A model generated the notes under the pieces. It did no database searches and was not told the DNA's origin. It saw only the letters and a program-made list of their open reading frames with translations. A stretch of DNA of 64,000 bases, from assembly GCA_964252035.1 (NCBI GenBank), contig OZ176204.1. The stretch is one strand, 5' to 3'. Shown piece after piece: positions 1-20,411 of this stretch; position 1 is the first letter of the stretch; each line of letters begins with the position of its first letter. A program made the position numbers and the translations under genes. The stretch comes from Podarcis erhardii. Its lineage: Eukaryota.

Positions 1-2222
1 ATGCACATCACCCAATTACATTACAATTAATTGCATTAATCGTCTCTCCAGTCAGCCTTTTTGACATGGTTTTAGAGCAGGGCTACTTCCCATATGGGAA
101 ATCAAATGTATAAGCAAGGGCAGATGTAGTAATAAATCATTGTTCCTTAGCTTGACACAACATGCATATAATGCTGCATAAAGTTACATTTTTGGTCCAT
201 ATGAAAAAAGGCAACAGTTGAAATAAAACTATTTCTGGCAAAGGGTAACAAAATGATGGCAATTTGTTATTAGAATTTTGGGCTAGACAGGTGCCCTTTG
301 CCTAAAAGTAACCATTTAATATTCTGAAGTACTTGTATTTATGGAAATTATGTGAGCAAAATTTAGAAGAATATTATGGTAACTTTAACAGGCCAGTTAT
401 ATCGCCCAACGTTAATTCCAACACACAGCATTTTGGTGCACAGTTCACATCTTCAGCCAAGAACCATTAGGTGGTGATAGATCAAGTGATGTACATATAT
501 CTGTAAACCATTCCCAATACCCCATGATTTCTAGGATTTAACTACTATACAGCCAATGGGGCAGTGTACTGAGGAATATACTCTTCCCAACATGATGGGA
601 AACATGGGTATGGGTGTGGGTGTGTTGCCGGGTGTTTGTGACTTTCCAGAGATAAGATTACAGAAATTCCACATGTGGATGTCTGTGTATACACCATGTG
701 ATCCAGAGGTCATGTAATGTAACAGTACATGAACAGACCATCATGCATACAATATGTTTGGATCTGAGACTGTGAAAACTAGCCATCTGTATGCTGGGGA
801 AAAACCAGTGAGGTATGAAAACAGAAGTTTTGCCTAGCTTTGAAAGGGCTGCAATCTGTACTACCAATGCTCACTGCAGGCCGAGCTACAAATTTCTCAA
901 GATGGAAGGACTTGCTTCTGTTTCAGTGGACATTATAACTGCAGTGCAGCTACGTCCTTCCACTGTAGCAAACACTGCAGTGCATTCATTTGTAATCCTT
1001 ACTCAATGAAAAGAAGAATTAAACACCTTTAAAATAATTCGTAAGGCAGTTCCAACCCCATGCTATGTTCAGTGCATTATACATGTTTATGTCTCAAATA
1101 TTTTCAATTACAAATTCTACTTTTCCACATATATTTCTCACCACTGATATTTAATTGCTAAGAATGCAGAAAATATACAAATAGTTGTCACCACCACATT
1201 TATACCAAGAGCCATTTTTAAAATTTCCTGCCCCTTTTTTTTTCTTCTCACATGAACCAATGCTATTTATCAAAAGCTGCTTTTCAGAACTGTATAGGTA
1301 TTTTAGGAACTAAATATCAGCAAGATCAAACAGAGGAAACCTATTTTCTTTCGCCTGCAAGCACCTAGTCCTGAAAGGCGCAGAACCCCTTCAAGTCTCA
1401 ATGAAGTAATGGCAAATTGTATATGGTCAGTCTCTTAAGACCATACAAGTATTATCAAGGTATGGAGGTGGGCATTACAGGAAACTACTGTACTTTTTAG
1501 ATAATTGAGCCAATTACTGTTTTCCCTTCAGGTGTGCTTGCTTGCTTACTTACTTACTTACTGTTTTAACAGGCAGGAAGTTAGCAGTCTATGGAGTCTC
1601 AAAAAGATCCTGCATTGTGACACACAGCCCCACAACCATGTTCCCCTTTGAGCTGCCATCTCACTAGTTACCATTTTTTATTTTAATTGTACATGGTCTT
1701 CCAGTCTTGGGAGACACTGAGGTTGGAATGGGCAACAGGTTATATAATATGACTCTCCTGCAGGAGAGTCTGCATTTTCTCCTCACATTTCTATTTCAGG
1801 CCACTATACAACATTTCAGCAAAATGTTTTTTAAGGAGTGTCCAGCCCAACATGAACACTGTATCAAATGGAGAATGCACCACCTTCCTAAGAAGTCTGT
1901 TCCAGTGGTTAAATTATTATATAACATAACCTACTATTGTGCATTTGGTTTGCTTTAACAGCCAAACATTGGTTTTTGTGTCTTCCTTTGCTACACTATA
2001 GCTTTTTAGTACACAGTACTTTCACCTTGTGAAGGTATCAGTACAGGCCTAAACAAATCTTACTTTCTCAGTAAGCTAAAAGCCCATTTCTACTGGTGCC
2101 ATTGCTTTGGTGGTGTTGCTGTACATTAATGGAGCTCAACAAAATTATCTACATCATCTTCCAATTAGTCAGGGTATTAAGACCTCCCAAAACTTCAACA
2201 GAAACAGATTTTGAATGTTGGG

Positions 2223-3101
2223 CTAGCAGTTTTCATATTTGTCAAAAGTCTCATAGAACCCTGGTCTGACTTTTCTGATGCTCATACGTATATGTTGACA
2301 TTCAGGTGCAACTGACTCGCTATAGCTAGTTGAAGATGCTGTCCCAGTAATCCAGCCAGAAGATAGGCGCTTTCTTTTTGCCTTATGTGAAAAGTTCCCA
2401 ATTCCTTTGCTGCGTCCAAGGCAAGGGTCATCTTTCTTCCTACTGCTGACATCTTCAACTGGCTGCTCATCTCTATTGGAAGTCATTCCTTTACGCTTAC
2501 ATGCATTTTTCTCTTCTTCTGCAATCTTCCTGAAGTGCTCCAGTGATTCTACTTTTCTTCGTCTTTCTATTGTTTCCATTTGTTTCTTGTCCACGAAGTC
2601 CTCAAAGTACATTTTTCTTTCACTCCTCTGATCTTCAAGAAATTTCCATTCAATGTCAGTCATCTTCACACCACTGTATTGCTCCAATTTCTCTCTTGTT
2701 CCTGTGTCTGTACAAAATATGTCAAAAAGCTGCTCTGAACTCCTGTTGAAATCATCTGCTTTCTGTGTAAACAACTCATTTTTTCTTCGCTTTCTGGACT
2801 GATATAATTTTGAAAACTCCTCATACACCTTAAGAATATGCTTCTTTATGCTTTGTGTTGCTATGGTATACAAATTGCAAAACAACCAGTGCTCCTGCAG
2901 AAGTTCAGCAAGCAACTGGGCAGCATCTTCTTTGGATCGCTGGGCTTGCCCAGCCCTTTTCGGGTGCAATAGATATAGCATGTTTTGAATGACATCCTTC
3001 TTGGTAGGCAGAATTCCTTGTGCAAATTCTGATGACTCCACATAATCAACTGTTCCCAGAGTTTTTTTTGCTTTTGCTTTAGTATCCAAAGCCGCCATCA
3101 T
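2223..3101 (-). CDS. Uncharacterised 292-aa protein resembling the N-terminal non-catalytic region of a DNA transposase (CC8L18.2-like / possibly hATm-type); candidate domesticated gene
   Basis: Uninterrupted 879-bp ORF in AT-rich DNA. Minus-strand acceptor tctcttttatttcag|C gives an exon start at 3130; the second ATG (ATGATGG) has strong Kozak context. Motifs LPTKKDV..MLY, EHW..CN.YT, LFDIFC.D, GVKMT..E..FLEDQR..RKM....VD and C.HIR.S.RKVR..FYET.DK match my recollection of invertebrate transposase N-termini. No DDE core follows the stop. Confidence 0.7.
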   Translation of the reverse strand: MMAALDTKAKAKKTLGTVDYVESSEFAQGILPTKKDVIQNMLYLLHPKRAGQAQRSKEDAAQLLAELLQEHWLFCNLYTIATQSIKKHILKVYEEFSKLYQSRKRRKNELFTQKADDFNRSSEQLFDIFCTDTGTREKLEQYSGVKMTDIEWKFLEDQRSERKMYFEDFVDKKQMETIERRRKVESLEHFRKIAEEEKNACKRKGMTSNRDEQPVEDVSSRKKDDPCLGRSKGIGNFSHKAKRKRLSSGWITGTASSTSYSESVAPECQHIRMSIRKVRPGFYETFDKYENC

Positions 3102-4189
3102 TCCTTTCCAGTGTCTCTTTATACCAAAAGCTGAAATAAAAGAGATATTAGACAGCTGAAATAGAGTAGAAACAAGAATGAAAAGAAAAACTTAATTATG
3201 TGAAGCTAAGAATATGTAAGTCAAGGTGGTCAAAGTGTTCAGGACTGCAGCCAACATAAAAAATCACGTAATTTATGGAGAGAGCATTACTTAGTTCCAC
3301 CCATTTGGATTAAGTAAGCTCCTATCTGAAAAACAAAACTGACTTGTCAAGCAGTAAAGTATTTTATTCATGTTAGCTGCAGTCTGAATTTCCCACATGA
3401 TCTGTCATTGGCACAGCTAAATCATACATATAAAATTCAGTATGTTCTTATATTTTAATATTTAAAAATATAGTGCAATATCACACAAGGTAGACCCAGA
3501 GTACTTGTCCGTTGATTTCAGTGGGTCTCCTTTGAGCACGATTAACATTAGATACCATCTATTAAACCCTATTAGGGAATTCACAAAAAGCCTTCTAGCA
3601 ATGGCACAGGTGTTTCTCCGATTAACACCTCAACAAGCAGTCTTAATATTTTGTCCGTTATAACTCAGAAATCTGTGGTGGCCAAGTTACCTTCAAATCT
3701 TTAAAAATATTTATTTACAACATTTCAAGCCTGCTCTCCCATCACACAGGTAGCCTTTAACAGATTGCACTGCAACAGTTCCAAGTAGCTGTGCTTGGAA
3801 TCCTCAATCTTGCTTTTTCAAAGCTGCCTGCTGCAATAAGTGCTCTGGTATAATTACATTAATCTTCCTGTCAGTGCAACCTGATGCATATATATTCACA
3901 AGCAAGTCCCAATGAGTTGACTATAGCATTTCCTCCCAGATGTGCATAGTGTTGCAATCTGAAATGGAACAGTATTTTCTAAAGGAAACCTGAATCCCAG
4001 AATTGAAACAGGCAAATAAATACAAATAGCACCTGTCAGCACATATACAATGATGCTTCCAAGTTTTCGCATTCAAGCAATTTCCTATTGTCAAACTGTA
4101 AGCAAATTCTCAACTGAAGGGCTCAAAACTTGGATTTTTAAGGAGATGCAATCACAAAATTTATGAAAGTCCGCTCTAGGTCCTGGAAA

Positions 4190-5720
4190 CTATGAGCGAG
4201 GGTAGTGCACTAAACCAAAGGGGCTTGAGAGCATAACGTCCGGGGATCACGTTCTGGAGGCCAACGGGGGGATTAAAGCAGCCCACCGAGAAGGAAGGGA
4301 TCTTTCTAAAACCTGTCAAGCGGACCAACCCTGCACCGCCTCAAAGCACCGGGCTGTCAAGAGCACCAGAGAACACCTGCGCACCCCATTGCCCGCCTGC
4401 AAGGCAGGGACCAGGCACTCCGCGTACGGCAGTTGCCAGCCCTTATTCCTGCCTGGAAAATAACGCCGATGAGGCGAAAGCCGCCACAGGCGCCATGAGG
4501 CGGATGGGGGTGGGGCCCGGCCGCCCTCCCTCTCAGCCCTGGCAAGTTCCTCCCCACTCCCAGGCCGAAGCCGCCTGAGGCCCAGGCGCCGTTTCCCTTG
4601 CCCGGCCGGCCAACCATTGAATAGCCCGGCCTGGCCGGCTCTAATCCCGCCTATCCCGTTATCCCCAATACCTGCCTTCGATCAGCAGAATCAGCCAGAA
4701 GAGGTAAAGCGTCAATTAAAAGCCCGCGGCCCATCCTTCGCCATCTTGGTAAGTGAGAGCGAGCGAGCGAGCCCTACGCAGCGGGAAAAGGGAAAGCGGT
4801 GCCGCCTCCGCCATCTTGAGAAAGGGCAGCGCGAGCAACCCTTCCCCTGTGGTGGTCTCTCATGCCGACGTCTCTATGATCTCAACTGTCATTCACCGAG
4901 TTGCTTTGAAAAAATAAACTGGGCGTTGGTAGCTAATATATGGTCCCGTTTTTGCAGCTGAGGCGAAAACCGAGCCTGTGAGGCCTCCTTGTGGGGAAAA
5001 AAAGACGAACAAGTAACGACGACGGCAAAAAAAAAAAAAAGACCCAGTCGCCAACTACCGTCAGGTGAGCAGAACCAGTAAGCGAAGCCAAGGCAAATGG
5101 ACGAAGGGGTCTTGCTTCTTAAGGGGAAGGTCGGAGGCAGGTTATCGTCAGTGCGAGGCAACCGATTGGTTAACTAACGCAGCCGTGCCCTGCTGAGCGC
5201 CATTACGCACTGGCGGAGGAGGAAGCTGATTGGTTCTTGAGGAGGCAACCCGTCTGGTCGCTATTAAACTAATAGCCTTTCTTGGGCGGAAGCTGAAGCC
5301 GCACCAGTACCAGACTCGACCATAGACCAATGCCCTCTTTCGGGAGACTGTCGTCATATTACTAATGATAGTGAGAGTGGGAAGAGAGAGTCAGCGGATG
5401 CCCCGGCTCCTGCGTTTCTACTACGCGTCAACCCGCCTTGCCACTGTCAGTCCGAATTGTGTGGCGCGGATCTGATTCGTCGGTGGCTGGAGTGTTAAGC
5501 AGCCTCAGCAGCCAATAGCTACCTGGTGAGTTGGAGGACGCGGATTGGTTCGTCGCTGAAATTATGCCGTAGTAGCCAATAGGTGCGTCGCGAAGTTTGT
5601 ATAAAAATGGTCGCGTTGAGGCGGAAGGTTGTGCAGTCCAGCATTCTGTTTTTAGCTGTTTTTGGATAGGCATCTTTCACCCGGGGGGCGGGAGTAGTCG
5701 TATCTTTGCTATGTCTCTAT
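4190..5720. promoter_or_regulatory. CpG island / bidirectional promoter (SCLY on +, transposase-derived ORF on -)
   Basis: Abrupt rise in GC and CpG. YY1-type AAGATGGCG on the minus strand at 4739-4747 and 4809-4817. CCAAT/ATTGG boxes at 5165, 5229, 5327, 5512, 5544 and 5576. TATAAAA at 5600-5606. Confidence 0.85.
5400..5525 (+). other. SCLY: Candidate non-coding first exon of SCLY (start approximate)
   Basis: Strong donor CTG|GTGAGT at 5525/5526 inside the CpG island. The first coding exon (7900) has an acceptor, so an upstream exon is required. Alternative + strand donors at 4749 and 5065 are not excluded. Confidence 0.35.
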
Positions 5721-6439
5721 TAAGATATACGCTCCCAAGTACAAAGGGAGGTTCAGTTTATGTCTTGTGGGCAAGAGCTGAGGAGAACAGTTCTCCATTT
5801 TGTTCAGCACAATTTCAGCAGTAAAAAACATATCAGTGTAAATAAAAGGAACCAACTTGGTGACTCATATAAATTGTGTTGGTTTTTTTTGTATTAATGG
5901 TAGTATGGTGCCATCCACGTTCATGAGGCTTGGCAACAAAACAAGAAGGAGCTGATAGGTCCCTGCCCCAAGGGGTTCACAATCCAGAAATAGGCAATGA
6001 CAGAAACGGGAGGGAAGCAGAGACAAGGCTTAGATAAGCAGTTATTTCAGGTACATGTATTTAGGGTTAATTACAGTAGGCCATTGGGATTAGAAGGTTG
6101 TGCTAAAATCTTAATGGAAAGGGCGGGGTTTCGGTGCAAAAACAAAGCAATGATAATTACAAACGGAGAGGAACGATAACAACTGTGGATAGGACTGCAA
6201 GACATCTAAGGGTCTTTCATATACAGTAGTGTGAGGCTCTCCCATTCCACTCAACAACCCTCCGTTGTTGAGTGATTAGCTACACAACAAAATTTTATTC
6301 TGGTAATGTGTTGGAAGTGTCTGAAGCTAGAAGCAGGTCTTTGCCCATAAACAGTGCCTATGCATTGAGCCTGTGAGAGAAAATGGAGTAGCAGGTGAAA
6401 ATTGTAACGGAATAACTACCATCACTGCAGATTGAACTA

Positions 6440-6598
6440 CAAATTAGAATTTTTGGGTTTCTATGGGTTTTTAAACTGTGGGGAGTATTGTTTTTGTTTG
6501 CTATTATGGTATGTATGGTATGTATTTTTGTGTTTTTATATTGTCAACCACCCTATGGATGAAGGGCGGTATAGAAATTTAATAAATAATGATAATAA
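6440..6598 (+). mobile_element. L2-like LINE 3' tail fragment
   Basis: T-rich run ending in gaagggcggtatagaaatttaataaataat, typical of L2-clade tails. Similar tails at ~24660-25210(-), ~44305-44430(-), ~46460-46665(+) and ~49720-49810(-). Confidence 0.5.
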
Positions 6599-6653
6599 TT
6601 TCCCCTCTACTATGAGCTTCCTTGGGGACATTAGGCAATTCACCTTTGAGGAA

Positions 6654-6780
6654 GAGTTGTAGCTTGGTAGTGTAAAGCACATGCTTTGCATGCAAAAGGT
6701 CCAGATTCACTTTCAGTCTCTGGCATTTCCAGGTAGGATTTTTTTTTTGGGGGGGGATTCTGGAGAGCCACTGTCAGTCC
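6654..6780 (+). mobile_element. Degenerate tRNA-Ala-derived SINE (Squam2-like)
   Basis: Similar to the copies at 14090 and 60671 (gctttgcatgca...aggtcc...ttcca ggtagg). Confidence 0.6.
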
Positions 6781-6978
6781 TAAAACATATCTCCCATATA
6801 CAAATCTTTTGACAATGTGTGTGACTCTTCCTTTGACTGCCTCCCAGCTGGAAACCAGGGAGGATAGCATATCAGTCCTAGGAAGACAGGGAATCTGAGA
6901 GATGGGAAATATTTCTTCTAACTTTCTTATGTCCATCTTTGGAAGTACCTCTACAGAATGGTAATGCAATATTCTTGA

Positions 6979-7765
6979 CATAGGTGCCATCTCTATAGGA
7001 TTGGACCCCCTCAATATTTGTAGGCAGGCCAAGCCCCCCCACCCCCATGTTGAGGGAGTGGAGGAAGCCTCCCAATGATGTGTGTCTAGTCCTTGGGCTC
7101 CTCCCACCACCACCATCCTGCCTACGAATGCAGCTGGACTACCTCAAACCGCTGCTGCCTGCCGCCTAACCTCCGCTGGAGGCCTTGCAGAAGAGACCTT
7201 GGCATAGCTGCTGCAGTGGCTGTGGAGAGCTAGTGGAGGTAAGGCAGTGCACGGGTGGTGGCGTTCTGGTTTGCAGTTGAAAGCAGGGGGCAGTGGTGTT
7301 GGGCTTCATTGTACAGTGGTGCCTCGCAAGACGAAATTAATCCGTTCCGTGAGGCTCTTCGTATAGCGGTTTTTTCGTCTTGCGAAGCAAGCCCATTGAC
7401 AGCTTAGCGGATTAGCGCTATTAGCAGTTTAGCGGCTTTTAGCGATCAGCTGTTAAGCGGCTTATCAGCGGATCAGCTGATAAGCGGCTTAGCGGCTTAG
7501 GAAAAGGGGGGGGAGGGAAAAAACCCCGCAGGAACTCGCAAGACATTTTCGTCTTGCGAAGCAAGCCCATAGGGAAATTCGTTTTGCGAAGCGCCTCCAA
7601 AACGGAAAACCCTTTCATCTAGCGGGTTTTCCGTCTTGCGAGGTGTTCGTCTTGCGGGGCACCACTGTATACCCATTGTCCTCACACGTGTGATGTCATG
7701 ATGTCATGTTGCGCTTGCGTGCGATGCTGGGCCACTCCAATCTGGGGCGCAAGTCAGTGCCTCTG
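6979..7765. mobile_element. hAT-type MITE containing a nested Tigger-like MITE
   Basis: Degenerate TIRs cataggtgcc... / ...agtcagtgcctctg; 8-bp TSD attcttga (6971-6978) / attcctga (7766-7773). Confidence 0.65.
7314..7667. mobile_element. Tigger/pogo-like (Tc1-mariner) MITE, 354 bp
   Basis: TIR cagtggtgcctcgcaagacgaa / ttcgtcttgcggggcaccactg; TA on both sides; CpG-rich, so probably young. Confidence 0.9.
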
Positions 7766-7910
7766 ATTCCTGAAGATACAGCAGAACGAGTAGTGGTGTC
7801 CTTTTGATTAATGGGCAAAGGCATGTCATAATTTATTTGTGCGCTATTTGAAGTCTAATGTTTCATGGAACAAAGTGGGTTGTGTTTTTCTTAAAATAGG
7901 TTGGTATAGA

Positions 7911-8008
7911 ATGGAAGAGAACCAAATGAAGAAAGTATTAGGGAACGAAGGAAATGAGAACAGAGAGAAAATTGGCTTTGATGGGGAAGAGAACAACTCC
8001 TCAAACAG
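7911..8008 (+). CDS. SCLY: SCLY first coding exon (exon 7900-8008; MEENQMKK...NSSNR)
   Basis: Acceptor ttttcttaaaatag|G at 7899/7900, ATG at 7911. Donor AG|gtttgt leaves phase 2, matching the next exon (AG+G = Arg). Confidence 0.75.
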
Positions 8009-11000
8009 GTTTGTAGCTTCCCTTGACTTTAAAAAATGGAGACAATTTTTTGACAATGGTAAGTGCTGAGATTTTGCTATTTTACCCACAATATACCTTG
8101 GGAATGAGTCCTGTTGAATTAAGTGGAACTTACTTCCAAGTAAATGTGTGTAGTTTGGATTGCAAAACTCCAAGCAAGTAAAAAAATCTTAGGATTGAGC
8201 TCTAGGAACTGAAAGATTATTATAGTAGTCAACTTCTTAAGTGCTAGAATGCTGTGATTTTCAGCAAAATCACTTTAAAGATTAGCAAATGCATTGTGGC
8301 ATATGCTTTCATGGGCCTGGGCCCACTCTGTCACATTCATGTGAGTGTGCCATATGATGTAGTCATCAAAACTGGCACCACATTTTAAAGCTTGGGGAGA
8401 GATAGTGATGTTTTATTTCAAAACCCCAGTATCATCTTTGTGGTTGTGGCAATGACGACTTCAGAAGTGGTTTGGTTAGGGCAGCATTTTTCATAACCAA
8501 CGATGCAACTTTGGCCCAAAGAGTGCTAGTGTGAATGTATCTTATTCCTTTTTCTGTTGTAACTATTCTTGCATTCTGTTCCCTTCAGGAAGATATACCT
8601 AGATTACAATGCAACCACCCCTCTGGCTCCAGAGGTGATTGAGACAGTTACAGAAGCCATGCATGAAGCATGGGGCAATCCGAGCAGCTCTTACACAGAA
8701 GGTGAGAGCAAGTAATAAATGCTCATGCAAGGAACACAGAGCCAAATCTGGCACTTCTTGTTACCAGAAATAATTATTCTGTATCAAAACAATTAAACTC
8801 TTCCAGAATTTGGGTGGACTTAATAATTTGTTTATTTATCACTTTATTATATCCTGGAACTCAAAGTGGTAGTCTTCCCCTAATGCCACTCTTTGGAGAC
8901 TTCCCCCCACCTTGCCTTGATAATAAGGTAAATGTGCCTTTGATTTCACAGGTCGAAGGGCTAAAAATATTATAGACGGAGCCCGTGAAAGTCTGGCTAG
9001 AATGGTAGGGGGACGACCCCAGGACATCGTCTTCACTTCTGGTGGGACAGAGGTGAGATATGAGATGCTGCTAGCACTGTTTTGACCTGGTAGTCATGTA
9101 AGAGATCAACCCATAACATGCTAGCTGTCTTTTTTCCTCAATGGAGTCTGACTTTATTTGCTTCTCATAGCATTGGTGATTCCATTCTTAATTAGTGCCA
9201 AGTAAGACCCAGCAAACACTCATCAGATAAAAAGAAAGTCTATCCCTCTTCTGTTGAATGGCTCTATCTTTTATTTAAAACCTGCGAAGGAGCATGTATT
9301 GCAATTTGATTCACTCACATGGAGGTAATGACTACAAATCAGTCCTCTGCCTCTGATCCTTCTGAGACTGAAAGACAAATCTGCCACTGAACTGGTTTTT
9401 GGGTAAGAAATTCAGCATTGTCTACTCCAGAGGACTGCACTGGTAAATCTGGATATTCATATGAACATATGAAATTGGGATTTGTATCCTTCCTTTTTCC
9501 ATTCAGGCAAACAATTTAGTGATCCACACTGTAGTGAAGCATTTTAAGGAAAGCAACAAGCAAAGTTCTGATGGACCAAGAGAAGATAAACAAAAGACTC
9601 TGGGGATGTGTCCACATTTAATTACATCTTGCATTGAGCATGACTCAGTCCGGCTCCCTGTGGAGCACCTGGTGAAAGAGCATGAGGCTGGTGAGTATAC
9701 TGTAGTGGATAGTCAGAGATTGCTGATAAAATTATACACACTTGCCAGATTCTGCTTCGGCAAAAGCTCTCTTTTTTTTAAAGCAATTTTAGTTTCTGAG
9801 TAGCAAATACTACTTTTTTTTGGTGTTGTTTAGTTGTCTTAGTTGTGTTCGACTCTCTGTGACCCCATGAACATGAGCATGCCTTGGAAACTCTCTCTTT
9901 CTTCTCAAAGCTTCTCCTTTTTTATGTCCATGGAGTTTTCTTGGCAAAATACTGGAGTGAATGGCCAGTTCCTTCTCCAGGTGGATCACATTTAGTCTAA
10001 ACTCTCTGCTATGACCTGTCCGTCTTGGGCGGCCCTGCACGGCATAGCTCAGAGCTTCTTGGAGTTATTCAAGCCCCTTGCCACGACAAGGCAGTGATCC
10101 ATTAAGGGGTTTTTGGGTATACTGTCTCTTTATTGTTTACTCCAAATGTGAGCTGTCTAAAGGTGGCTCAGCAGTACTTTCACTGTGGTGCTAATGGTCC
10201 AGAATTGGGGGCAATTCTGAACCTTTAATTCAAATTNNNNNNNNNNNNNNNNNNNNNNNNNNNNNNNNNNNNNNNNNNNNNNNNNNNNNNNNNNNNNNNN
10301 NNNNNNNNNNNNNNNNNNNNNNNNNNNNNNNNNNNNNNNNNNNNNNNNNNNNNNNNNNNNNNNNNTATCATCTCCTATCCTATTCTATCCTATCCTATCC
10401 TTCTCGCCTGTCAAATAGTGACCAACACATGGAGTCAAAGATGGCATTCCTAACCTGGCTGATAAGTGGTCTTATCACTGCATAGGGAGGGAGGAATATA
10501 TAGCTTGTGTTCAAACGGTGCTAGGTTTAATCTCTGGTGCTTCTCCAATTGGGCAGGATCATGGCAGAACTCAGTATGAGACTCAGAGCTCTTAGTGGGG
10601 GCTTTTGCAAACTGAAGAGACTTAAACAGCACGCAGCATTTCCCCTCGGCTTCCTCCTCTCTTATCTTCCAAGTATCCAGCTGAGCTCCAGGAAAATCCA
10701 TTTTTGCTCACCTGCTTCTTTCATTAAATGCTGCTTCTAAGTCAATAGCCACTTCCTCCCAAATTCCCTTATGACAGCCATATCTTAATCTTTCAAGACT
10801 AAGGAGCGCTTGCCTGTTGCCTAGCAATAGCTCTGCTATTCCCTGTGACTTTCTCCACTGCTGCCAGATACATAGTAACTGCTGATGAACGTGCTGAGCT
10901 ATGGGATCAACATCTTTTTTTTGCATCCTGATTTACAGAAGCCACTTTTGTACCTGTGTCCAAAGTGACAGGACAGGTGGAAGTAGATGAAGTTGTTGCA

Positions 11001-14000
11001 GCAATCCGTCCAACTACATGTCTAGTTTCCATTATGCTGGCCAATAATGAAACTGGGGTTATCATGGTGAGTTGTGCCTTCAGTTCTGATTACATGTTTA
11101 AGGATATGAGGTTCATATATGTGGTCAGATGATCCCAAGAGCCCATGAGAGGGAGCTGATGCTCCCCCAAAATATTTCTACTCTCCTTTCACTCCACCAA
11201 CTTTCAATCTCAGTATGTTTTAGGTATACAGTAAGCCCTACAACTCCTCCTGCCAACCTAGCAGTTCGAAAGCACATCAAAGTGCAAGTAGATAAATAGG
11301 TACTGCTCTGGCAGGAAGGTGTACGACGTTTCCGTACACTGCTCTGGGTCACCAGAAGCAGCTTAGTCATGCTGGCCACATGACCCGGAAGCTGTACGCC
11401 GGCTCCCTCGGCCAATAAAGCGAGATGAGCGCTGCAACCCCAGAGTTGGCCACGACTGGACCTAATGGTCAGGGGTCCCTTTACCTTTTTAAGCCCCGCA
11501 ACTTACACAGGTGTTTTAGTTCTGGGGATAGTGCATAAAGCCAAAATCATGTGTAGTCAAAACACACTGGATGCAACGCCAGGTGGGATTGCCGAAGTTT
11601 TCCCCCCAGATGCCCGCTCCTCTTTCTGCCCCCCTTTTAATTTTTTTTTTTTTTTGCGAAGTGCCTAAAGCTAAATGCGCACATGTTAAATGTACATAAA
11701 TTACAGGTCTACTGTATAGCAAAACCTTTAGTTCAACAATTTTTGTCACCTCATTGCTCCCCCAATCTAGTTTGGAATTACAGGTTTTGCTCTCCGGAGA
11801 CACAGAGACATAGCCCTATGCCGTGAACCATGGTCTCCCTGTGTAGGGTTATGTGTTTTGTGGAGTTTATATGTGGTGTCCTTTGTTTGGATGCTGAGTT
11901 ACACCAAATGCTATCTTCTCCCTTGATCGCCAAGGCGGGGCAGTTGTACTACATAACAATAAAGCCATATAATACCATCAATAAAAGTTCAAAGGTAACC
12001 ATCAGCTTTCCAGGCAAGTTATTCCGTGAAGGCATCATATGCCAGCCAGTAGGGCAGTAGCCAAAGAGAGAGTCAGAACACTTGTGTTCCTGGTGAGATG
12101 ATGCCTCCTGATGGTGCTTTCTTTTATCAGCCTGTCTCCGAACTCAGCCAACGGATTCAAGCTCTCAATCGGAAGAGAATGGCATCTGGTCTGCCACGGA
12201 TCTTGGTACACACAGATGCAGCACAGATGATTGGGAAAGGTCAAGTGGACGTGCAGGATCTGGGAGTGGATTACCTCACTATTGTGGGGCACAAGGTATG
12301 GTGCTTCTCTCTTCTGCCTGCAATGCAGTTTCTACATGCAGGGTAAGAGATGTCCATGCATCTAGGTCATCCCCCAACATGGTAAATCCAATATCCATGG
12401 AGCAGAGAGTTGCTGTCAGCCCATAGAGTCATCCTTTATTGTTGATAAAACATTTAGAGAGAAAAATAAGAAGGAACATACCAGGGCTCCCTGAACACCA
12501 GCCATCATTCTGAGAACCAGACAGTGACCATAATCCAGAGGTGCTTTGTGTGACAGAAAGCTGGCAGTAAAAACGTTTGGTGTTCATGATTGATTCTCTC
12601 ACTCACAATTCTCATTGTGCAGGATTGCAGACTGACTCTATTGGGGCGAAAGGTGTTTTTCTTATGTTGTTTATTAAATGTGTCTAATGCTATCGACATC
12701 CTGGTTTCCAAAACTTTTTTTTTATTTGAAAGTTTGTAAAAACAGTGCACAATATGTACACACAAAGAATAAACAATGAGGCCACCTCACTTTAGCCTTT
12801 TGTGAACTTTGGGAGATTCCATGTGCTAGAGCAGCAGTTTCTCAAGTTTTTTTTAAATTGAGAACCATTGTTGATTTGCTTGCTGCTGACAATTGTATTT
12901 TGCTACAGCTGCCATGCAGATTGTCATTTGGTGACTGTAATGTAAAGTCTGCCCTGAACAGTATCGTGGCCCTCTTCTCTGCAGCCCATGAATCTAGCAT
13001 GGTTGCACAGGAATGCAGAAAGTGTTGTTTATATTGTCTTTTATTTTCACCATGAACTCTTGGAACACCTAAAAACATAGTGGACAGTCGATAACTCACT
13101 TCTTAGTATGCAATGCAACTCAACAGCTTCTCCACCAGATGGCAATCTGGGAACAATGTTGAGTGAATTTGTCCACATTTTCACATTGCGCAGGAGAGCA
13201 TGACACACAGCAGGAGATGTCCAGTGTGTCAACATCACTTTCCATTACAGTATTCAAAAACAGCTTTTCATTTTTTTATTTATTTTGACAGTAGCCAAGT
13301 AATGATTCAAGTTAATCTCCAGGCGTAATTAGTTTAATAACTGTGGCATCTGGGAACATGTTTGTCATGTATTTTTTGAAGCACACAAATGCCTGTCAAG
13401 TGATACAGAACAGGGGGAGAAAACACAGGAAACTCTTCGGTTATGTGTGAAATAGCACTGAGATAGTCTAGGGAACGGGTAGCAGTGAGCATAGGATTCA
13501 CCCATACTTCTCTCCCACGGGCAACCATGATTTCCCCAAGGATTAATGTTTGCTTCTCTGCTCTTGTCAGCCTTACTTCTCTGTGGTCAAAGCACCTCAG
13601 TTTCCTGTTGGACACACCACTTAGTTCTTGTCTGGAGGCATTAGCTTTGTGATTTATCGTTGCAGTTCTATGCCCCGCGTATTGGAGCGCTGTATGTGCG
13701 AGGCCCTGGTGTCACCACTCCTCTCCATCCCATGCTGTTTGGAGGTGGGCAGGAACGGAACTTCCGCCCTGGGTAAGAAGGATGAGGGCACAGAGGGAGC
13801 CAGTTAATCCAGGGAGAGACCAAGTAAGGTGGGGACCTCTCTTGGATGTGGGAGCAATATGTGGGTAGCCCATGTTCCTCTTCTTCATGCGGGTGAGGGG
13901 CTGCAAGAGAAGACACCAAGCAGTTTTTTTTGAAGATAGTTTTCTTTGAGACTCCAAGGATGTATAGATTAGTGAGTGAAAGGCTCAGCTTTTGAAAACC

Positions 14001-17000
14001 TTTCCCTTTCGTATCATGTTTCTCATTTGGCAAAGTGTGAAGAGTTTCAGGATAAGCAGCTGGGAAATGCAGTGTAGGGTTTGTATCATGGGCTGTAGCT
14101 GAGTGCTAGCACACACACACTTTTCATGCAAAAAGATTCTAGGTTCAATCCCCAACATTTCCAGGTAGGGTTGGGAAAGACCACAGCCTGAAACCTTGGA
14201 ATGCTACTGCTGGTCAGTAATACTGAGCTCAATGGACCAGTGGTCTGACTTGGTATAAGGCAGCATCTGCGCTTCCTAAGTCACATTCAGATAACAAGAA
14301 AGACCAGATCTCCTCCCCCCACAACCGAGTAGCTCAGGAGCAGTAGCTCCTATCATGCAGTAGCGCCATCTTCAGTCCCTGCATTATGCTAGTTACCCAA
14401 GTAGATATAGCCCCTGTGCTTGTGTCACTTTTATTATGCTTTAGGAATAAATACACACTGCACTTCTCTGTTCTAGGACTGAGAATACACCAATGATTGC
14501 TGGCCTTGGCAAGGTAAGCTCAGAAGTGATGAGGGATAAAAATGTCAGTTATGGATTCAACATGAGATGCTGTCCTGGTAGCAAGGCTCAGATTTCAACC
14601 CAGCATCCTTCTTACAAAAATTTAAAGGCAGAAGATTTCCCTGGGTTTGCTTATCTGTGCTGGTGCTTCTCTTCCCTCACACCCTCATGCTCTCATACCA
14701 GAGGTGGAGTTGACCTATGGAGCAAAAATTCTAAATCTGTGCACAGTGGGACAAGGATGCTTACAAATGCATTACTGTAAACTCCGGTTGTTTCCCATCA
14801 TTGTAAGGATCTGGTTACTGAGGACTTGTTGAAATACTAGAGGTTGTTCTTCTAGGCATATTTTTCAGAGCAAATAGCTAATCTTTACAGTTTTCCCTGT
14901 GGCTCTGTGTGAATAGCATGCCAGAACAAGAAAGGCACATCAAGTTGGCCTATATATACACTGGGGTGGGGGGGGGGGAAGTGTTCTCAATAACTCAACA
15001 CCCAGCCACTGTTTTAAGGTCTGTTGGAGAATATGTCCAGATTTTCTCTAGTAGCCCTCTTCATGTGCTGCTTTCACAAAGGGACAACATACATACCAGG
15101 AGCTGTAGGTCAGCATCTTTAGCCCCATGTCTAAGGTTGTGTAGCTCCTCCCAGCTTCTGCTATTGCCTTTTTGGCCAAATGCCTCCTCCCCAAGTAGTA
15201 AACAGTGTATTAAAACAAAATGCACCATAGAGGAATAGGTTTTAAAGCAGGGAGCCTTTACTATCTGTGTAGGCTGCCAATGCAATTTAGAACCCTGGTA
15301 GATCAGGTGAGTAAACTTATGAAGAGAGCTTATGTCACTGAGGTTGCAGGTATATAGTTATATGATTAATGGGTTTTCTTTTAGTTGATTGAGAGTAGTG
15401 GGTATCTTGCAGGTGTGCTCTAGAGAGAGAGGCTCGTGCAAAATTGTGCCATGTAGACTTTCCTTGGTCTCTGACAAATCACTGTCAGACCAAAGGAATC
15501 ACATTATGAATAGGCACAAAAGATGATTCCATTCAGATTGCCTACCCATTTCAGTACTGCATCGAATATCCTGATCTGTCTGGATGGGGACATTCTATGG
15601 GAATCATCATTCCCTTTATGGTTCTGTCTTTTGTTGTAGCCACTGAGAAACATGTTATGCTGATTGTGTTCCTTTGCAGGCAGCAGACTTGGTGAGCAGA
15701 CACTGTGAGGTTTATGAAGCTCACATGAGGAAGGTCCGGGATTACCTGGAAGAGAGACTTGAAGTGAGTTCTCTGGGTGCCTGTTTTCTGGATTCACCTG
15801 CAACCTTTACACAGGGAAGGGAGGATTGACCCCTGTTTGTAGATAGAATTGTATGACTTTCTTCTTGCTGCCTTCCTTTGTAGGAATGCTAAGCTGGGGG
15901 ATAGTGAAGTGAGGCCAATCATTAACAAACATTTCTTGAAAGTATTATTTTTGCACATTTTAGGCCGCGTTTGAAGAGCAAGGAGTTTATTTTAACTGCA
16001 GACTGAAAGGCTCAAGGAGACTGTGCAACACTTGTAACTTTTCTGTCATGGGCTCAGGACTAAAAGGTAATCCCCTAGGGCTCTAAATTTTCACCATTCC
16101 TATATGGCTGCTGTCAGTCTACTTTAGGTGTTGTTGGGGGGTTTTTTTGCCTACAGCTTCCTCGGTGACCAACACATGTTAATCCTATCTATAGATCTCA
16201 AGACTGCATTGCTCTTAAGATAGTTTCAGAGCAGATTAAAACCAGACTGCTGCTGTGTGAGGGAGAGTGGGGAGATGCTAAAATATGGTGTTGGAAATTG
16301 GTTTTCTAATTGCTCAAAGAAATTACAAATTGTGAAATTTTGCAAATACAGTGGAACTTCGGGTTACGTATCATCCCCTTACGGGTAATGAGCTCCACTA
16401 ACCTGGAAGTACAGTGGTACCTCTGGTTACAAACTTAATTCGTTCCAGAGGTCCGTTCTTAACCTGAAACTGTTCTTAACCTGAGGTACCACTTTAGCTA
16501 ATGGGGCTTCCCACAGCCGCTGCACCACCGCCTCACGATTTCTCTTCTCATCCTGGGGCAAAGTTCTTAACCCGATGTGCTACTTCCTGGTTAGTGGAGT
16601 CTGTAACCCAAAGTGTTTGTAACCCAATATGTTTGTAACCCGAGGTACGACTGTAGATACTCCTGGTAGCAAACTTTGCCCCAGGATGCGAGCGGAAGTT
16701 ACGCAGTGGTGGTGGTGCAGCGGCAGCCCCATTAGCGAAAGCACGCCTCAGGTTAAGAACAGTTTCATGTTAAGAATGGACCTCCAGAACGAATAAAGTT
16801 CATAACTGGAGGTACCACTGTAAACAAAGGAAATGAGTTTTAAGCTTTGGCTTTTTATAATCTCAGCATGAATTTCATATTTATCTCAGGAGGGATTCTA
16901 ATTGTAAAAGCCACATCCTGATTTTATCTATTAAACCTTTTTGTCATTAAAACGCTACTTTGTCTTTTCAGATCTGCATTTGACAATTTTATATGTATGA

Positions 17001-19703
17001 TGTGCATAACTTTCGCATTTGTTTTTTCCCCCCTTCCTTCCATCTTTAGTGAGAAGCCAGTTCTAGCAAAAGTGTAGATGGGATAAGCATTGAATGGAGT
17101 GAGAGGAGGTTGAAAACCAATTCTATGGGTTCCTTCCTCCACCAGGTCCTTGGGTATTTCATGGCATGCCTATGTCTTGTGTTTTCTGCAGGTCGGCTGG
17201 TGCTGTCTCACTGTAGGACTTTGCTTGCCAGTGTTGGTGCTGCATGCCACTCCGAGAAGGGTGACCGGTAAGGAACCATGTTGGGAAACTGGGCATTCTG
17301 TGGCTGGAGGGGACAGATCCATCTGATGTAGAAAAGTGAAAGCAAAGGATGCAACACCTGTACTCACCTACCTCCTCAGGGAACTCTGCTTCTTAATGGT
17401 TGTATTAGTGTGTGTGTGTGTGACAATAGTAGGATTCACCCAACCTGCCCTGTCAGCAGCAGCCCTGCACAAGGCCTTGCACTTGCACAATGAAACCTTC
17501 CCATCTCTCACCGTGTGCCCCAAAATTGGCTCAGGGAGGGGAGTCAGGAGAACCCCACAACAGTGGGTGGAGATGGTGGGATCATTTCATCTGGGAAGCT
17601 GAAATGCTTGTGCAGGCAAAATGATTGGAAGAGCACAATGTTGAATTCCACCCTATGACACTAAAGCCAGCCCTTACATCTGACGGTCTTCCCTCCTGCC
17701 CCCCAAAGATGTACCAAAGGAACGTTTTCCATTTTCAAACGTGAAATCCTCCTGCTTTAGGAGAAGACTGCCAGAGACATGTGACACCGCCTCCCACAAT
17801 CGCTCACCCTGCTTCCAAGCCATGCCATTTGCCCCTGGACAATGGGCAGACAAATCCTGTCCCTCCACTTAGCTGTGTGAACTGCCCTTCTCCTGGCTTT
17901 AAAGAGCTGCTGGTCCAGGACTAAGAAGTGGAAGGGGTTGTATAGTTGCCACAGTGCCAGTCCCACTTTCCCCCCAGGTGGTAAGGGCAGCACAGGAAAG
18001 GGTGCTAGCAGTAGGGGGTTACTGAGATAGTGTTGCAGACTGTTGCCGCTTATTCAGGAGCTGAGCTTATTATGGAAGCTGGTCAATCTGTTTTAAGTTC
18101 ATAAGCTGGTTAATGTATTTGTATCTTAGTGGAAAGTGTTTTCTTTGCACTTTTGTACAAGCCAACATTTGCATAAGCTGTGGCCTTTCTACCTTGGCAT
18201 CCACTCTTTTGGAACTCACAGGGGATGGTTCCAGCTGGGCAGGGAAATAGGTGATCAGCTAAGTGCCTAGGATTAGGATATCATCAAGTGGTTTTCCTTT
18301 GAATAGAGAGAGCAGTGTAGTGTGACAGATCATGTGTCTGAGCAGCAACTTGCTCCCCTGCTGTTGTGCGCTGCTTGTTTCAAATACTGGAGAGAGCGGT
18401 GGAAACCTAAGTGCCTTGTATTGTATTTCTTTCATCTAAAGATTTTCCTAGAATGCTTGTGGTTCAACTTTATGTCTGAGGCCTTCAAAATCATATGAGA
18501 ATATTGGTATGACAAGCCTTGTGTACCAATTGATTAGCTACATAATGCTGAAGCCAAATCTGAGAACAGAATGTGCTAGAATCGAGGCTTTTGCTCCCAT
18601 ACCTACTCCAGAGATAATACATTTCAGTTCCATGTTTCCACATGGATGCGCACAGGATCACGTTCAAAAGCAGGTTCCTGAATAGCAAGCGTGAAGGGCC
18701 AAACAAAATTCAGATGCCATTCACACAAGTAACAACCGCAGGAATGAGGGGCCAGTCTGGACTGGCACCCTGTTATTGGGGGAGAGAACTGAACCACTCC
18801 TCCCCTGCCATGGTGGCCCCAATCTGGATGGGGCTGCCTGTGCCTACTATATGCATGGGGGGAAAGCTTCCACTGGAGAGGACAGAAACATTTTCCCCCC
18901 AATGTGATTAACAGGGGCAGGGGTCCACAGCAGGGTCCGAGCTCCCTTACAGTACCTCCATGCCAGGGTCCCCATCCAGCTCTTCTTGCTAACACTAGAT
19001 GGTGTTGCATCTAGTTTGGGCTTAAGTCAGATTTATTTGTTTGTTTTTTACATTTCTTTCTCATGCTTTGATGAGTTCAGAGCAGCATACACAGTTCTTT
19101 GACCCTCTTTGACACCAAACCTGTGAGGAGGTTAGCTAGTCACTAGCTCAAGGTCAGTTAATTATGTTTGAGCTGGGACCTAGGCTCTCCCCAGTTGTAA
19201 TCTGACACTCTAACCACTCTACATACCAGTAGATGGGGAACCTTTTTTAGCCACATTCCCTCCTGGGCAACATTTCAGAGGCTGTGCCTGCAAGAGAAAA
19301 GTGTTGCCTATCATTTAAAACCAACACTGCAGTGGATCTGCACCTAAGCTGGGGTGACTGCAGCATTCTTAGGAAGAACAGTGATGTGAATGTGCTCTAC
19401 AGAGGCAGAGTTCTTTGCGGCTCATATTGGAAACTAATGAGACTTAGAAATAAGTATAGGACTGCATAATTTTTGCTTCCTTCCTCTGTTCACTTCTTGG
19501 AACCACTGTAGGGAATTTTAGGAGGTTAAACTTGACTTACTTTATCTTTGTTCACCAGGCCATCCGCTATCCTGCTTAGCTGCGGAATTCCTTATGACGT
19601 GGCACAGAACGCCTTGCGTCTCAGTGTGGGTCGTGCTACCAGCAAGGAGGATGTGGACCTGATTGTGGAAGATCTGAAGCAGGCTGTGGCTCAGCTACAA
19701 TAG
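7911..19703 (+). CDS. SCLY: Selenocysteine lyase, full gene: join(7911-8008,8589-8701,8952-9052,9507-9690,10939-11066,12131-12295,13666-13772,14477-14513,15680-15763,15964-16066,17192-17267,19559-19703), 1341 nt, 446 aa
   Basis: NifS/class V PLP enzyme motifs: [45 protein letters not shown] (PLP Lys), GTEN and SVGAACHS (catalytic Cys). All introns are GT-AG with consistent phase. Confidence 0.97.
8589..8701 (+). CDS. SCLY: SCLY coding exon 2 ([11 protein letters not shown]...[10 protein letters not shown])
   Basis: cag|G ... G|gtgaga; 113 bp. Confidence 0.95.
8952..9052 (+). CDS. SCLY: SCLY coding exon 3 (GRRAK...FTSGGTE)
   Basis: cag|GT ... GAG|gtgaga; 101 bp. Confidence 0.95.
9507..9690 (+). 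CDS. SCLY: SCLY coding exon 4 (ANNLVIH...[13 protein letters not shown])
   Basis: cag|GCA ... G|gtgagt; 184 bp. Confidence 0.95.
9822..10106 (-). mobile_element. BovB (RTE)-derived short element: BovB 5' end joined to BovB 3' end (Bov-A-like)
   Basis: Reverse complement reads atggatcactgccttgtcgtggc.aggggcttg...ggagaaggaactggc...ccagtatt.tgccaagaaaactccatggac...catggggtcacagagagtcgaacacaact...aaacaac, the recalled BovB termini. Confidence 0.75.
10237..10365. other. Assembly gap (129 N) next to a (TATCC)n-like microsatellite
   Basis: N run; tatcctattctatcctatcctatcc follows it. Confidence 1.
10939..11066 (+). CDS. SCLY: SCLY coding exon 5 (ATFVPVSK...[11 protein letters not shown])
   Basis: cag|AA ... 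ATG|gtgagt; 128 bp. Confidence 0.95.
11229..11714. mobile_element. Tigger-like MITE interrupted by a Sauria SINE
   Basis: TA|cagtaagccc.. and ..aggtctactg|TA ends. Confidence 0.65.
11246..11490 (+). mobile_element. Sauria SINE (Squam1/POM-type), 5'-truncated
   Basis: cctgccaacctagcagttcgaaagcac...ggccacatgacccggaag...acgactggacctaatggtcaggggtccctttacct; 13-bp TSD aagccc(ta/cg)caact. Confidence 0.9.
12131..12295 (+). CDS. SCLY: SCLY coding exon 6 (PVSELSQR...HTDAAQ...VGHK)
   Basis: cag|CCT ... AAG|gtatgg; 165 bp; ends in the PLP-binding Lys. Confidence 0.95.
13666..13772 (+). CDS. SCLY: SCLY coding exon 7 ([10 protein letters not shown]...[10 protein letters not shown])
   Basis: cag|TTC ... 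GG|gtaaga; 107 bp. Confidence 0.95.
14090..14278 (+). mobile_element. tRNA-Ala-derived SINE (Squam2-like)
   Basis: gggctgtagct... B-box ggttcaatcc ... aatactgagctcaatggaccagtggtctgact...ataaggcagc. Confidence 0.8.
14477..14513 (+). CDS. SCLY: SCLY coding exon 8 ([12 protein letters not shown])
   Basis: tag|G ... AAG|gtaagc; 37 bp. Confidence 0.95.
15680..15763 (+). CDS. SCLY: SCLY coding exon 9 (AADLV...[10 protein letters not shown])
   Basis: cag|GCA ... GAA|gtgagt; 84 bp. Confidence 0.95.
15964..16066 (+). CDS. SCLY: SCLY coding exon 10 (AAFEEQG...[10 protein letters not shown])
   Basis: tag|GCC ... G|gtaatc; 103 bp. Confidence 0.92.
16349..16820. mobile_element. Tigger-like MITE with a second copy of the same family (16412-16653) inserted in inverted orientation
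   Basis: Outer TA|cagtggaacttcgggttac ... gaggtaccactg|TA. Inner TA|cagtggtacctc ... gaggtacgactg|TA. The reverse complement of the inner copy aligns to the rejoined outer copy. Confidence 0.9.
17192..17267 (+). CDS. SCLY: SCLY coding exon 11 (RLVLSHC...[12 protein letters not shown])
   Basis: cag|GT ... CG|gtaagg; 76 bp; contains the catalytic Cys. Confidence 0.95.
19033..19230 (-). mobile_element. Degenerate tRNA-derived SINE (Squam3-like)
   Basis: Ends in acactctaaccactctac, similar to the copies at 28405 and 33028. Confidence 0.5.
19559..19703 (+). CDS. SCLY: SCLY last coding exon (PSAILLSCG...LRLSVGR...AVAQLQ*)
   Basis: cag|G; TAG at 19701-19703. Confidence 0.95.
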
Positions 19704-20411
19704 GCCAGATTTTCAGTCACCTAGTGAGACAGTTTTGCCCTCTGAAACCAGGAATTGAGCTTACCTGACCCTAATTTCCCATTGCTCTGGGTGCTATTAC
19801 ATTTAACAGAATGAGGCTAGATAACATTCTAGTCAGCTTCTGGCCACTGAATTCTTATTGAATAATCTCTAGTGATTCCCCAGCCCTTGAATACAGCAGG
19901 CCAGAAATCAGTGCTCCCTGAATGTAGTCACTATGCTGAGCAGGCTCTGCCAGCAGATTTTACTCATTGAAGTGGGTAAACATTTCTAGTTGGATGTTTA
20001 GATCTACGATTGAGGTTTTTGTGTGGGTTCAGGAAACAAGCCTAAATATTATGGTTTGAATGGACAGGTGAATCCCAAAATATTGAAAAATTGGGAGCTT
20101 GCCTTGGTACCTGGAAACAGCCACTCTTTTGATGCCACCCTTCTGGGGTATTCCTTACCAGGAATGAAAAGCAGTTGCCCTCTATATAAACACTGAAGGA
20201 ACATGAATATTTCTTCTTGCTGCAGCAACAGGTTGTAGCTGCTATAGTATTGCACTGTGTTTAGCATTGAGATGTGCAGTGGGACTAGAATGTGCATTCT
20301 TCTAGAGCTGAAGACGAGAGAGAGAAAGAGAAAGAGAAAGAGAGAAACTTTCATTTCACATTGCTGTGTTTTGTGTTATGAAGGCTGCATAGATACCAAC
20401 CTCTCTAACCT

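Follow-up and report, generated by a model that had tools for sequence, protein, structure and literature searches.

The window analyzed here, a 64,000-nucleotide (64-kb) stretch of the genome of the lizard Podarcis erhardii (assembly GCA_964252035.1, contig OZ176204.1), hosts near its beginning two genes arranged head-to-head. One is SCLY, encoding selenocysteine lyase, on the plus strand; the other, on the minus strand, is an open reading frame (ORF) of 292 codons, which an original prediction based on the bare sequence had denominated a candidate domesticated gene derived from a DNA transposase. The ORF is a genuine host gene of sauropsids, found in squamates, turtles, crocodilians and birds, and is not the remnant of a transposable element (TE). 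As indicated by sequence comparisons, the gene arose once, before the last common ancestor of sauropsids, from the N-terminus of a hAT-like transposase of the Hermes fold, the catalytic part of which was lost about 300 million years ago.

The ORF and its transcripts

The ORF opens with ATGATG and proceeds without interruption up to a TAG stop codon (window 2223-3101). Upstream of it, the minus-strand tract tctcttttatttcag has its end at 3131, so that the coding exon would begin at 3130, 29 nt 5' of the ATG. Both the intact frame and its own minus-strand acceptor (AG at 3132-3131), on which the original prediction was built, are present. The arrangement polypyrimidine-TTTCAG is found about 29-34 nt 5' of the ATG also in Sceloporus, ostrich, Gopherus and Alligator, that is, in five lineages including that of the window. 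The two basic patches attributed to the protein are similarly present, SRKRRK in its first half and KAKRKR at residues 240-245. Terminal inverted repeats (TIRs) had not been seen next to the ORF, and this held: no inverted repeats flanking the ORF were detected in the window, and the TIR motif of the related transposon family described below has no match there. The 64-kb window hosts neither a second copy of the gene nor a catalytic-domain remnant 3' of the ORF stop, and its region 1-9000 has no match in Rfam.

Transcripts have been identified in six Logan assemblies (runs SRR12656981, SRR12656982, SRR12656989, SRR12657011, SRR12657022 and SRR12657023), derived from another squamate. In five of the six contigs a contiguous SCLY reading frame of 439 amino acids is found on one strand and the domesticated ORF on the other; the sixth includes only the initial part of the SCLY coding sequence (CDS). 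The source of the contigs can only be spliced RNA, because the SCLY CDS is intronless in them; in the window it is split into twelve blocks, the outermost ends of which are at 19820 and 7926. The stretch preceding the domesticated ORF aligns to window 4862-4682, within a CpG island, jumps to 3132/3130, and from there is colinear across the CDS as far as 1665. In the 3' untranslated region (UTR), one more block matches window 1292-1107. The predicted acceptor is therefore used, and the expectation that the gene is expressed from the SCLY CpG island is borne out as well, as exon 1 of the spliced squamate transcripts maps into the island common to SCLY. The domesticated gene thus consists of two exons, a non-coding exon 1 located in this island, and an exon 2 that includes the full CDS and a long 3' UTR. 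The nearest donor in the window after the aligned portion of exon 1 is CAG/GTATTG, a candidate that would place the exon end at 4672. In contig L010 the ATGs of SCLY and of the domesticated ORF are about 360 nt apart. Since both mRNAs are joined in one contig across six runs, their 5' ends overlap or abut, which is the signature of a bidirectional promoter. Alligator contig L005 and bird contigs L015-L022 were also considered, and dropped as evidence of splicing, because they are colinear with genomic DNA and hence uninformative in this respect.

A block of exon 1 (4710-4845) is conserved with Sceloporus, and two YY1-like motifs AAGATGGCG(G/A) are found on the gene's minus strand in the interval 4700-4850. 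Both motifs are kept in the transcript of the other squamate. On the plus strand, the same interval contains two consensus-like donors, CTTG/GTAAGT at about 4748 and GAG/GTAAAG at about 4703. At the other end of the gene, the similarity to Sceloporus (78% identity over window 3192..1060) covers the 3' UTR; AATAAA/ATTAAA signals are located at about 1687, 1155 and 320.

Distribution and constraint in sauropsids

A search of 5.8 billion clustered proteins yielded 63 homologues. All the sauropsid ones are 274-318 amino acids long, and the best are entries denominated 'uncharacterized protein LOC...'. Identity to the window protein is 92% (Sceloporus) and 89% in lizards, 88% in a snake, 67-70% in turtles, 62% in Alligator and 59-65% in birds, the lowest sauropsid value quoted being that of a tinamou (59%). 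Among the named hits, stand-alone orthologues were found in no other vertebrates. According to cluster look-ups, geckos, skinks, lacertids, Varanus, an amphisbaenian and many snakes have a single annotated entry in each genome, usually with several transcript isoforms.

The arrangement of the window, with the ORF divergent from an adjoining Aminotran_5 gene that corresponds to SCLY, is shared by Sceloporus, ostrich, Gopherus and Alligator. A single syntenic orthologue beside SCLY, which the original prediction had indicated as a check, is hence present in fence lizard, ostrich, tortoise and alligator. The ratio of nonsynonymous to synonymous substitution rates (dN/dS), proposed as a further check, is 0.075 by the Nei-Gojobori method (NG86) for the window and Sceloporus sequences, with an unsaturated dS of 0.51. 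Values range from 0.075 to 0.20 in the nine computable pairs, those other than window-Sceloporus spanning 0.076-0.196; all are far from 1 and denote strong purifying selection; a further pair, saturated for dS, gave no value. The maximum-likelihood tree groups the sauropsid proteins in a single clade of short branches (100/100 support), in which squamates are separated from turtles plus (alligator plus birds), mirroring the species tree.

The features of the locus are listed in Table 1. The ATG exon of SCLY (7900-7999) directly follows an acceptor (aaaatag), and 11 further coding exons span 8575 to about 19697; SCLY being on the plus strand and the domesticated gene on the minus strand, the two are head-to-head, as had been proposed. 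The 5' UTR of the cDNA from the other squamate stops matching the window upstream of the ATG exon, so the first exon of SCLY is non-coding too, and likewise belongs to the island. This is plausibly located in the 4.9-5.1 kb part of the island, with approximate boundaries, as the foreign 5' UTR aligns only weakly to 4872-5089. The start of the deposited Sceloporus SCLY gene call (L001:5600-5905, MRLVQNGF...) is not SCLY-like, and was set aside as a probably mis-predicted first exon. Within SCLY intron 1 there is a second GC-rich patch (6900-7800, GC up to 0.58), which hosts a minus-strand ORF of 158 amino acids (6640-7116) and shows no conservation with Sceloporus in blastn comparisons. The SCLY CDS start and the ATG of the domesticated ORF are 4.8 kb apart in the window, and only about 1.4 kb apart in ostrich. 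In the latter species the gene on the other flank of the domesticated gene encodes a SP100/SP140-like protein with HSR and PHD domains (L002:15793-18611).

Table 1. Features of the domesticated gene, its product and the adjoining SCLY gene in the window
Feature	Position	Strand	Basis
3' UTR, at least 1.1 kb, probably longer	1107..2222	-	RNA contig blocks down to 1107
CDS, 292 amino acids plus stop TAG at 2223-2225	2223..3101	-	Uninterrupted ORF; entire CDS within the last exon
Conserved C-terminal motif (P.E.QHIR.SIRKVRPGFYET.DK), residues 263-292	2226..2315	-	Alignment
Disordered, fast-evolving linker, residues 207-262	2316..2483	-	pLDDT <50
KAKRKR basic cluster, residues 240-245, candidate nuclear localization signal	2367..2384	-	Conserved inside the variable linker
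Long charged helical segment, residues 166-206 (predicted helices 172-183, 186-206)	2484..2606	-	AlphaFold2 model
Folded N-terminal domain, residues 10-165, predicted mostly helical with a short N-terminal beta-hairpin	2607..3074	-	AlphaFold2 model, pLDDT mostly >90
5' UTR portion of the coding exon, 29 nt	3102..3130	-	Acceptor position and RNA contigs
Acceptor of the 5' UTR intron, with polypyrimidine tract and AG dinucleotide (3132-3131)	3131..3145	-	Sequence; conserved in five sauropsid lineages; transcript contigs join exactly there
5' UTR intron, about 1.54 kb	3131..4671	-	Gap between two mapped blocks of RNA contigs L009, L010 and L014; donor end inferred
CpG-rich island, GC 0.51-0.68, bidirectional promoter region for the domesticated gene (-) and SCLY (+)	4200..5700	.	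GC profile and RNA contigs
Non-coding exon 1 in the CpG island, approximate boundaries	4672..4862	-	L010 1801-1985 aligned to window 4862..4682
SCLY (selenocysteine lyase, Aminotran_5)	7900..19697	+	tblastx vs compact ostrich gene; squamate cDNA

Protein layout and transposon relatives

The window protein has been modelled by AlphaFold2 with a confidence (predicted local distance difference test, pLDDT) of 72.9. Constraint along the sequence is domain-like, high in residues 10-165 and in the last 30, and low in the linker. Residues 10-165 are the most conserved part, mean identity being 82% among sauropsids and 44% to TE proteins, and the model assigns to them a helical domain of undescribed fold. 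Mean sauropsid identity is 56% in residues 166-206, 34% in linker residues 207-262, and 75% in residues 263-292, a segment modelled with moderate confidence. Inside the linker, sauropsids retain a K/R-R-K-R alignment block, which in TE proteins reads KKRR; conserved as it is within a variable tract, the KAKRKR cluster looks like a nuclear localization signal (NLS).

Sequence profile searches of the PDB yielded no match for the window protein. In AlphaFold DB clusters and the ESM Atlas its fold was found, besides its own family, only in the N-termini of uncharacterized arthropod, cnidarian and chordate proteins. These include a Daphnia 'Cc8K15.2-like protein', counterpart of the 'CC8...-like' name given in the original prediction, and others labelled MULE or SWIM-containing. 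The domain thus appears confined to TE-like proteins and to the sauropsid gene. Protein-language-model neighbours with SAP/HeH domains scored 0.64-0.69, below the reliable range.

HMMER, run exhaustively on 1.84 billion representatives, yielded 457 relatives, and in every longer one (469-742 amino acids) the match is the N-terminus. When the C-terminal part of one longer relative was used as query, about a hundred proteins were found, many of which are intact, measure about 930-940 amino acids and are encoded by contigs of 3.3-4 kb. None of the full-length copies returned by this search is from a sauropsid; genomic copies are found in Branchiostoma, Patella, Octopus and toadfish. Over its whole length the window protein aligns with the N-terminal 290 residues or so of these invertebrate and fish proteins, and the correspondence with the sauropsid proteins is motif by motif. 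All the sauropsid proteins end at the same alignment column (...FYET.DK..NC), where the long proteins run on into a domain of about 600 amino acids.

A 936-aa member of the family was modelled by AlphaFold2 (pLDDT 77.8). Foldseek searches with this model place the Hermes hAT transposase at ranks 1-12 (E from 2.7e-5, probability 1.0), followed by the P-element transposase. By VIA-align, residues 313-781 of the model superpose on Hermes 135-609 with Z 14.2 over 340 residues; Z is about 10 for retroviral integrase cores and 8.2 for RAG1. Residues D368, D437, C464 and H467 are invariant in 26 members, and E745 is found in 22 of the 23 that are full-length.

TIRs have been delimited in two genomic copies of the family; they are 15 bp long, begin with TAGGG/TAGCC and are TAGGGGG.GGTGTTA-like. 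The Branchiostoma belcheri copy (L007:9227-13634) has ends made of TAGGGAGGGGTGTTA and its imperfect inverse, and is flanked on both sides by an exact 7-bp direct repeat, TTGTTAA. The other copy (L008:9647-13147) ends with TAGGGGGTGGTGTTA and TAGGGGGGGGTGTTA, is flanked by ATACTAT, and lies in a microsatellite. In the toadfish Thalassophryne amazonica, five chromosome-size contigs carry at least five copies, with mutual identities above 90%. TIRs, 7-bp target-site duplications (TSDs) and the multicopy state in toadfish identify the full-length relatives as cut-and-paste transposons. Their assignment to hAT is qualified by three observations: the TSD is 7 bp in both copies (n=2), and not the 8 bp expected of hAT; the alignment of the family contains no N-terminal Cys/His (BED-type) finger pattern; no Pfam family, that of hAT dimerization (PF05699) included, is matched by any of 26 members, even with the E threshold relaxed to 1. 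For these reasons the family is called hAT-like, and not a proven hAT member. The hATm type named in the original prediction is a putative assignment.

Other peculiarities of the family were noted. The L007 element has imperfect subterminal inverted repeats of about 220 bp carrying AGGTCAAAGGTCAC motifs. The L008 element is hosted by a metagenome-derived contig of 1.9 Mb, in which several DUF4246 genes and a reverse-transcriptase fragment are found nearby (L008:1-20000). The toadfish copies are internally deleted, encoding 565 amino acids, and the insertion domain is gone. The toadfish protein P0293 is 64% identical to P0044 of the mantis shrimp Oratosquilla, and the tree joins the two as sister rows (99/90), both being farther from the amphioxus copies than from one another; judging from the sequences, horizontal transfer among marine animals could account for this closeness. 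Protein P0012 of Asterias rubens (405 amino acids) includes two tandem N-terminal modules and no catalytic domain, and may be either another truncated derivative or the annotation of nested or tandem TE fragments.

Origin, function and known systems

In the tree the sauropsid clade is nested (98/95) in a subgroup that includes amphioxus, starfish, toadfish and mantis-shrimp copies, and the window protein is 52% identical to the toadfish copy across all of its 292 residues. The transposase origin originally envisaged is confirmed, in that the gene is homologous to the N-terminal 290 residues or so of Hermes-like transposases of about 930 amino acids endowed with TIRs and TSDs. Horizontal acquisition of the source transposon, also envisaged there, is conjectural. 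The description of the product as catalytically dead has to be amended, as the catalytic domain is absent altogether. Domestication kept the N-terminal part of about 290 residues of a hAT-like transposase, with the loss of the whole RNase-H-like catalytic and insertion domain; the compact helical domain, the charged helical segment, the disordered linker with its basic cluster and the basic C-terminal motif are what was retained. Synteny, an intact ORF under purifying selection, lack of TIRs and TSDs, nesting among mobile-element proteins and transcription, all features by which domestication is recognized, are found together at this locus. A recent or decaying transposon fragment with a fortuitously open frame would share the homology to transposon proteins, but is excluded by synteny in five lineages, dN/dS values of 0.075-0.20, a conserved 5' UTR intron and spliced transcripts, as well as by the lack of a TIR, a TSD or a second copy within the window; its probability is practically nil. 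The reverse route, in which the domain of an old host gene was captured by a transposase, has some grounds, because transposases do capture host domains, and the N-domain fold is found at the N-terminus of several different TE-like architectures, among which proteins labelled MULE or SWIM. It is nonetheless very improbable: the stand-alone form was found in sauropsids only, as one derived clade nested among the TE copies of amphioxus, starfish, crustaceans, fish and metagenomes, with no orthologue in other vertebrates among the named hits, and the ends of all the sauropsid proteins coincide, inside a region that TE proteins span without a break. Domestication and the status of host gene are quite likely the best explanation of the data.

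Eukaryotic cut-and-paste transposases bind the ends of the transposon through the part that precedes their catalytic core, by means of BED fingers in hAT, THAP domains in P elements and helix-turn-helix (HTH) motifs in Tc1/mariner. As the N-terminal region of transposases recognizes transposon ends, a nuclear DNA-binding role is suggested for the window protein: the basic cluster of the linker would act as NLS, and the retained module as a nuclear DNA-binding regulator. Sequence-specific binding of DNA in the nucleus, in the regulation of transcription or chromatin, is the most likely of the roles considered, at slightly less than even odds, and is a tentative reading drawn from analogy. Several observations weigh against it. 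No Pfam family matches the protein, Foldseek searches of the PDB with its model gave no significant match (best E 1.5), and in an unfiltered structural scan (VIA) the best Z was 3.6, at noise level, although winged-helix/HTH DNA binders occupied the top rows. The protein is also only mildly basic (isoelectric point 9.2). As regards the gene itself, the RNA contigs come not from the species of the window but from another squamate, the protein of which is 87% identical; and neither a mammalian nor an amphibian counterpart was found among annotated proteins, the only data behind this absence. A product of the same origin might have a different job, as a protein-interaction or oligomerization module, or as a relic transposition repressor of the KP type, a truncated N-terminal transposase that poisons the full-length enzyme. 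The lack of a recognizable DNA-binding fold speaks for this alternative, and the long charged helical segment predicted at residues 166-206 could mediate oligomerization. Dimerization of Hermes is due in part to the region immediately preceding its catalytic core (PDB 2BW3/4D1Q), and the sauropsid protein ends just before model position 291, the earliest start of the Hermes alignment (Hermes residue 114). A pure anti-transposon repressor, in turn, would be expected to decay after the transposon family has disappeared. No family copies or TIR motifs were found in the window, nor a sauropsid full-length copy in the search with the C-terminal part, yet constraint persists in every sauropsid lineage; since no element of the family is seen in the sauropsid data, a pure repressor is unlikely. 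The alternative as a whole, interaction modules included, is somewhat unlikely. The regulator hypothesis can be extended to a more speculative proposal, which we hold as doubtful though possible: the N-terminal module would represent a previously undescribed class of sequence-specific DNA-binding domain, and the product of the gene would be a transcription or chromatin factor peculiar to sauropsids, co-expressed with SCLY from one bidirectional promoter. Its origin, about 300 million years ago, would be a transposase of a hAT-like lineage that is yet to be classified, with a non-BED N-terminus and a 7-bp TSD.

A full-text literature search by gene identifiers (e.g. LOC424740) and for sauropsid transposase domestication found no paper describing the gene, which is listed in the databases consulted only as an uncharacterized LOC, without a name. 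Among the main sources of regulators peculiar to a lineage are domesticated transposases, as exemplified by RAG1 and the THAP, ZBED and PGBD families; to our knowledge, nearly all the characterized cases are mammalian or pan-vertebrate. The interest of the gene resides in its age, its lineage restriction and its undescribed domain. It has been kept in every major sauropsid lineage, and its transposase ancestry provides a testable hypothesis for its function. The finding also points to an apparently unclassified, still active lineage of hAT-like transposons in marine animals, the N-terminal domain of which would be a natural system for finding the DNA target.

The full-length relatives resemble Hermes and other hAT transposases (PDB 2BW3, 4D1Q, 6DWZ, 8SJD) in the RNase-H-like core, into which a large all-alpha domain is inserted (Z 14.2), in the invariant D and D, the near-invariant E and the CxxH that follows the second D, and in TIRs beginning with TAG. 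The structural alignment reaches the C-terminus of Hermes (residue 609), and a C-terminal N-x-x-x-E-R-x-V-G block of the relatives resembles the hAT 'SERxFS' block. In contrast, the family has at its N-terminus, instead of a BED zinc finger, a helical domain for which neither Pfam nor the PDB provides a match, the Pfam hAT dimerization model misses the relatives, and the TSD is 7 bp in the two copies instead of the usual 8. The window protein itself holds none of the Hermes-like part. The 'Cc8K15.2-like' and other uncharacterized TE-like proteins of arthropods and cnidarians (AlphaFold DB clusters A0A164TKT7, S6D4N7, J9JUN6 and others; P0130, P0152) have the N-domain fold in common with it, at Foldseek E values of 1e-7 to 4e-3, as well as sequence motifs, residues 6-165 being 33-38% identical; a D...D...C..H core follows by eye. 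They are a more distant lineage.

Some domesticated genes keep only the DNA-binding region of a transposase; P elements gave rise in this way to THAP-domain proteins, hAT elements to BED-only ZBED proteins and Harbinger elements to NAIF1. BED, THAP and Myb-like Harbinger derivatives act as DNA-binding regulators without a nuclease. Their folds are known and their binding has been demonstrated, whereas the fold of the window gene product is undescribed and its binding putative; the window gene is moreover sauropsid-wide, with no mammalian counterpart among annotated proteins. As in THAP, ZBED and NAIF1 genes, the gene is single-copy (in the window), syntenic, devoid of TIRs and under purifying selection, and has lost the nuclease while keeping the N-terminal module.

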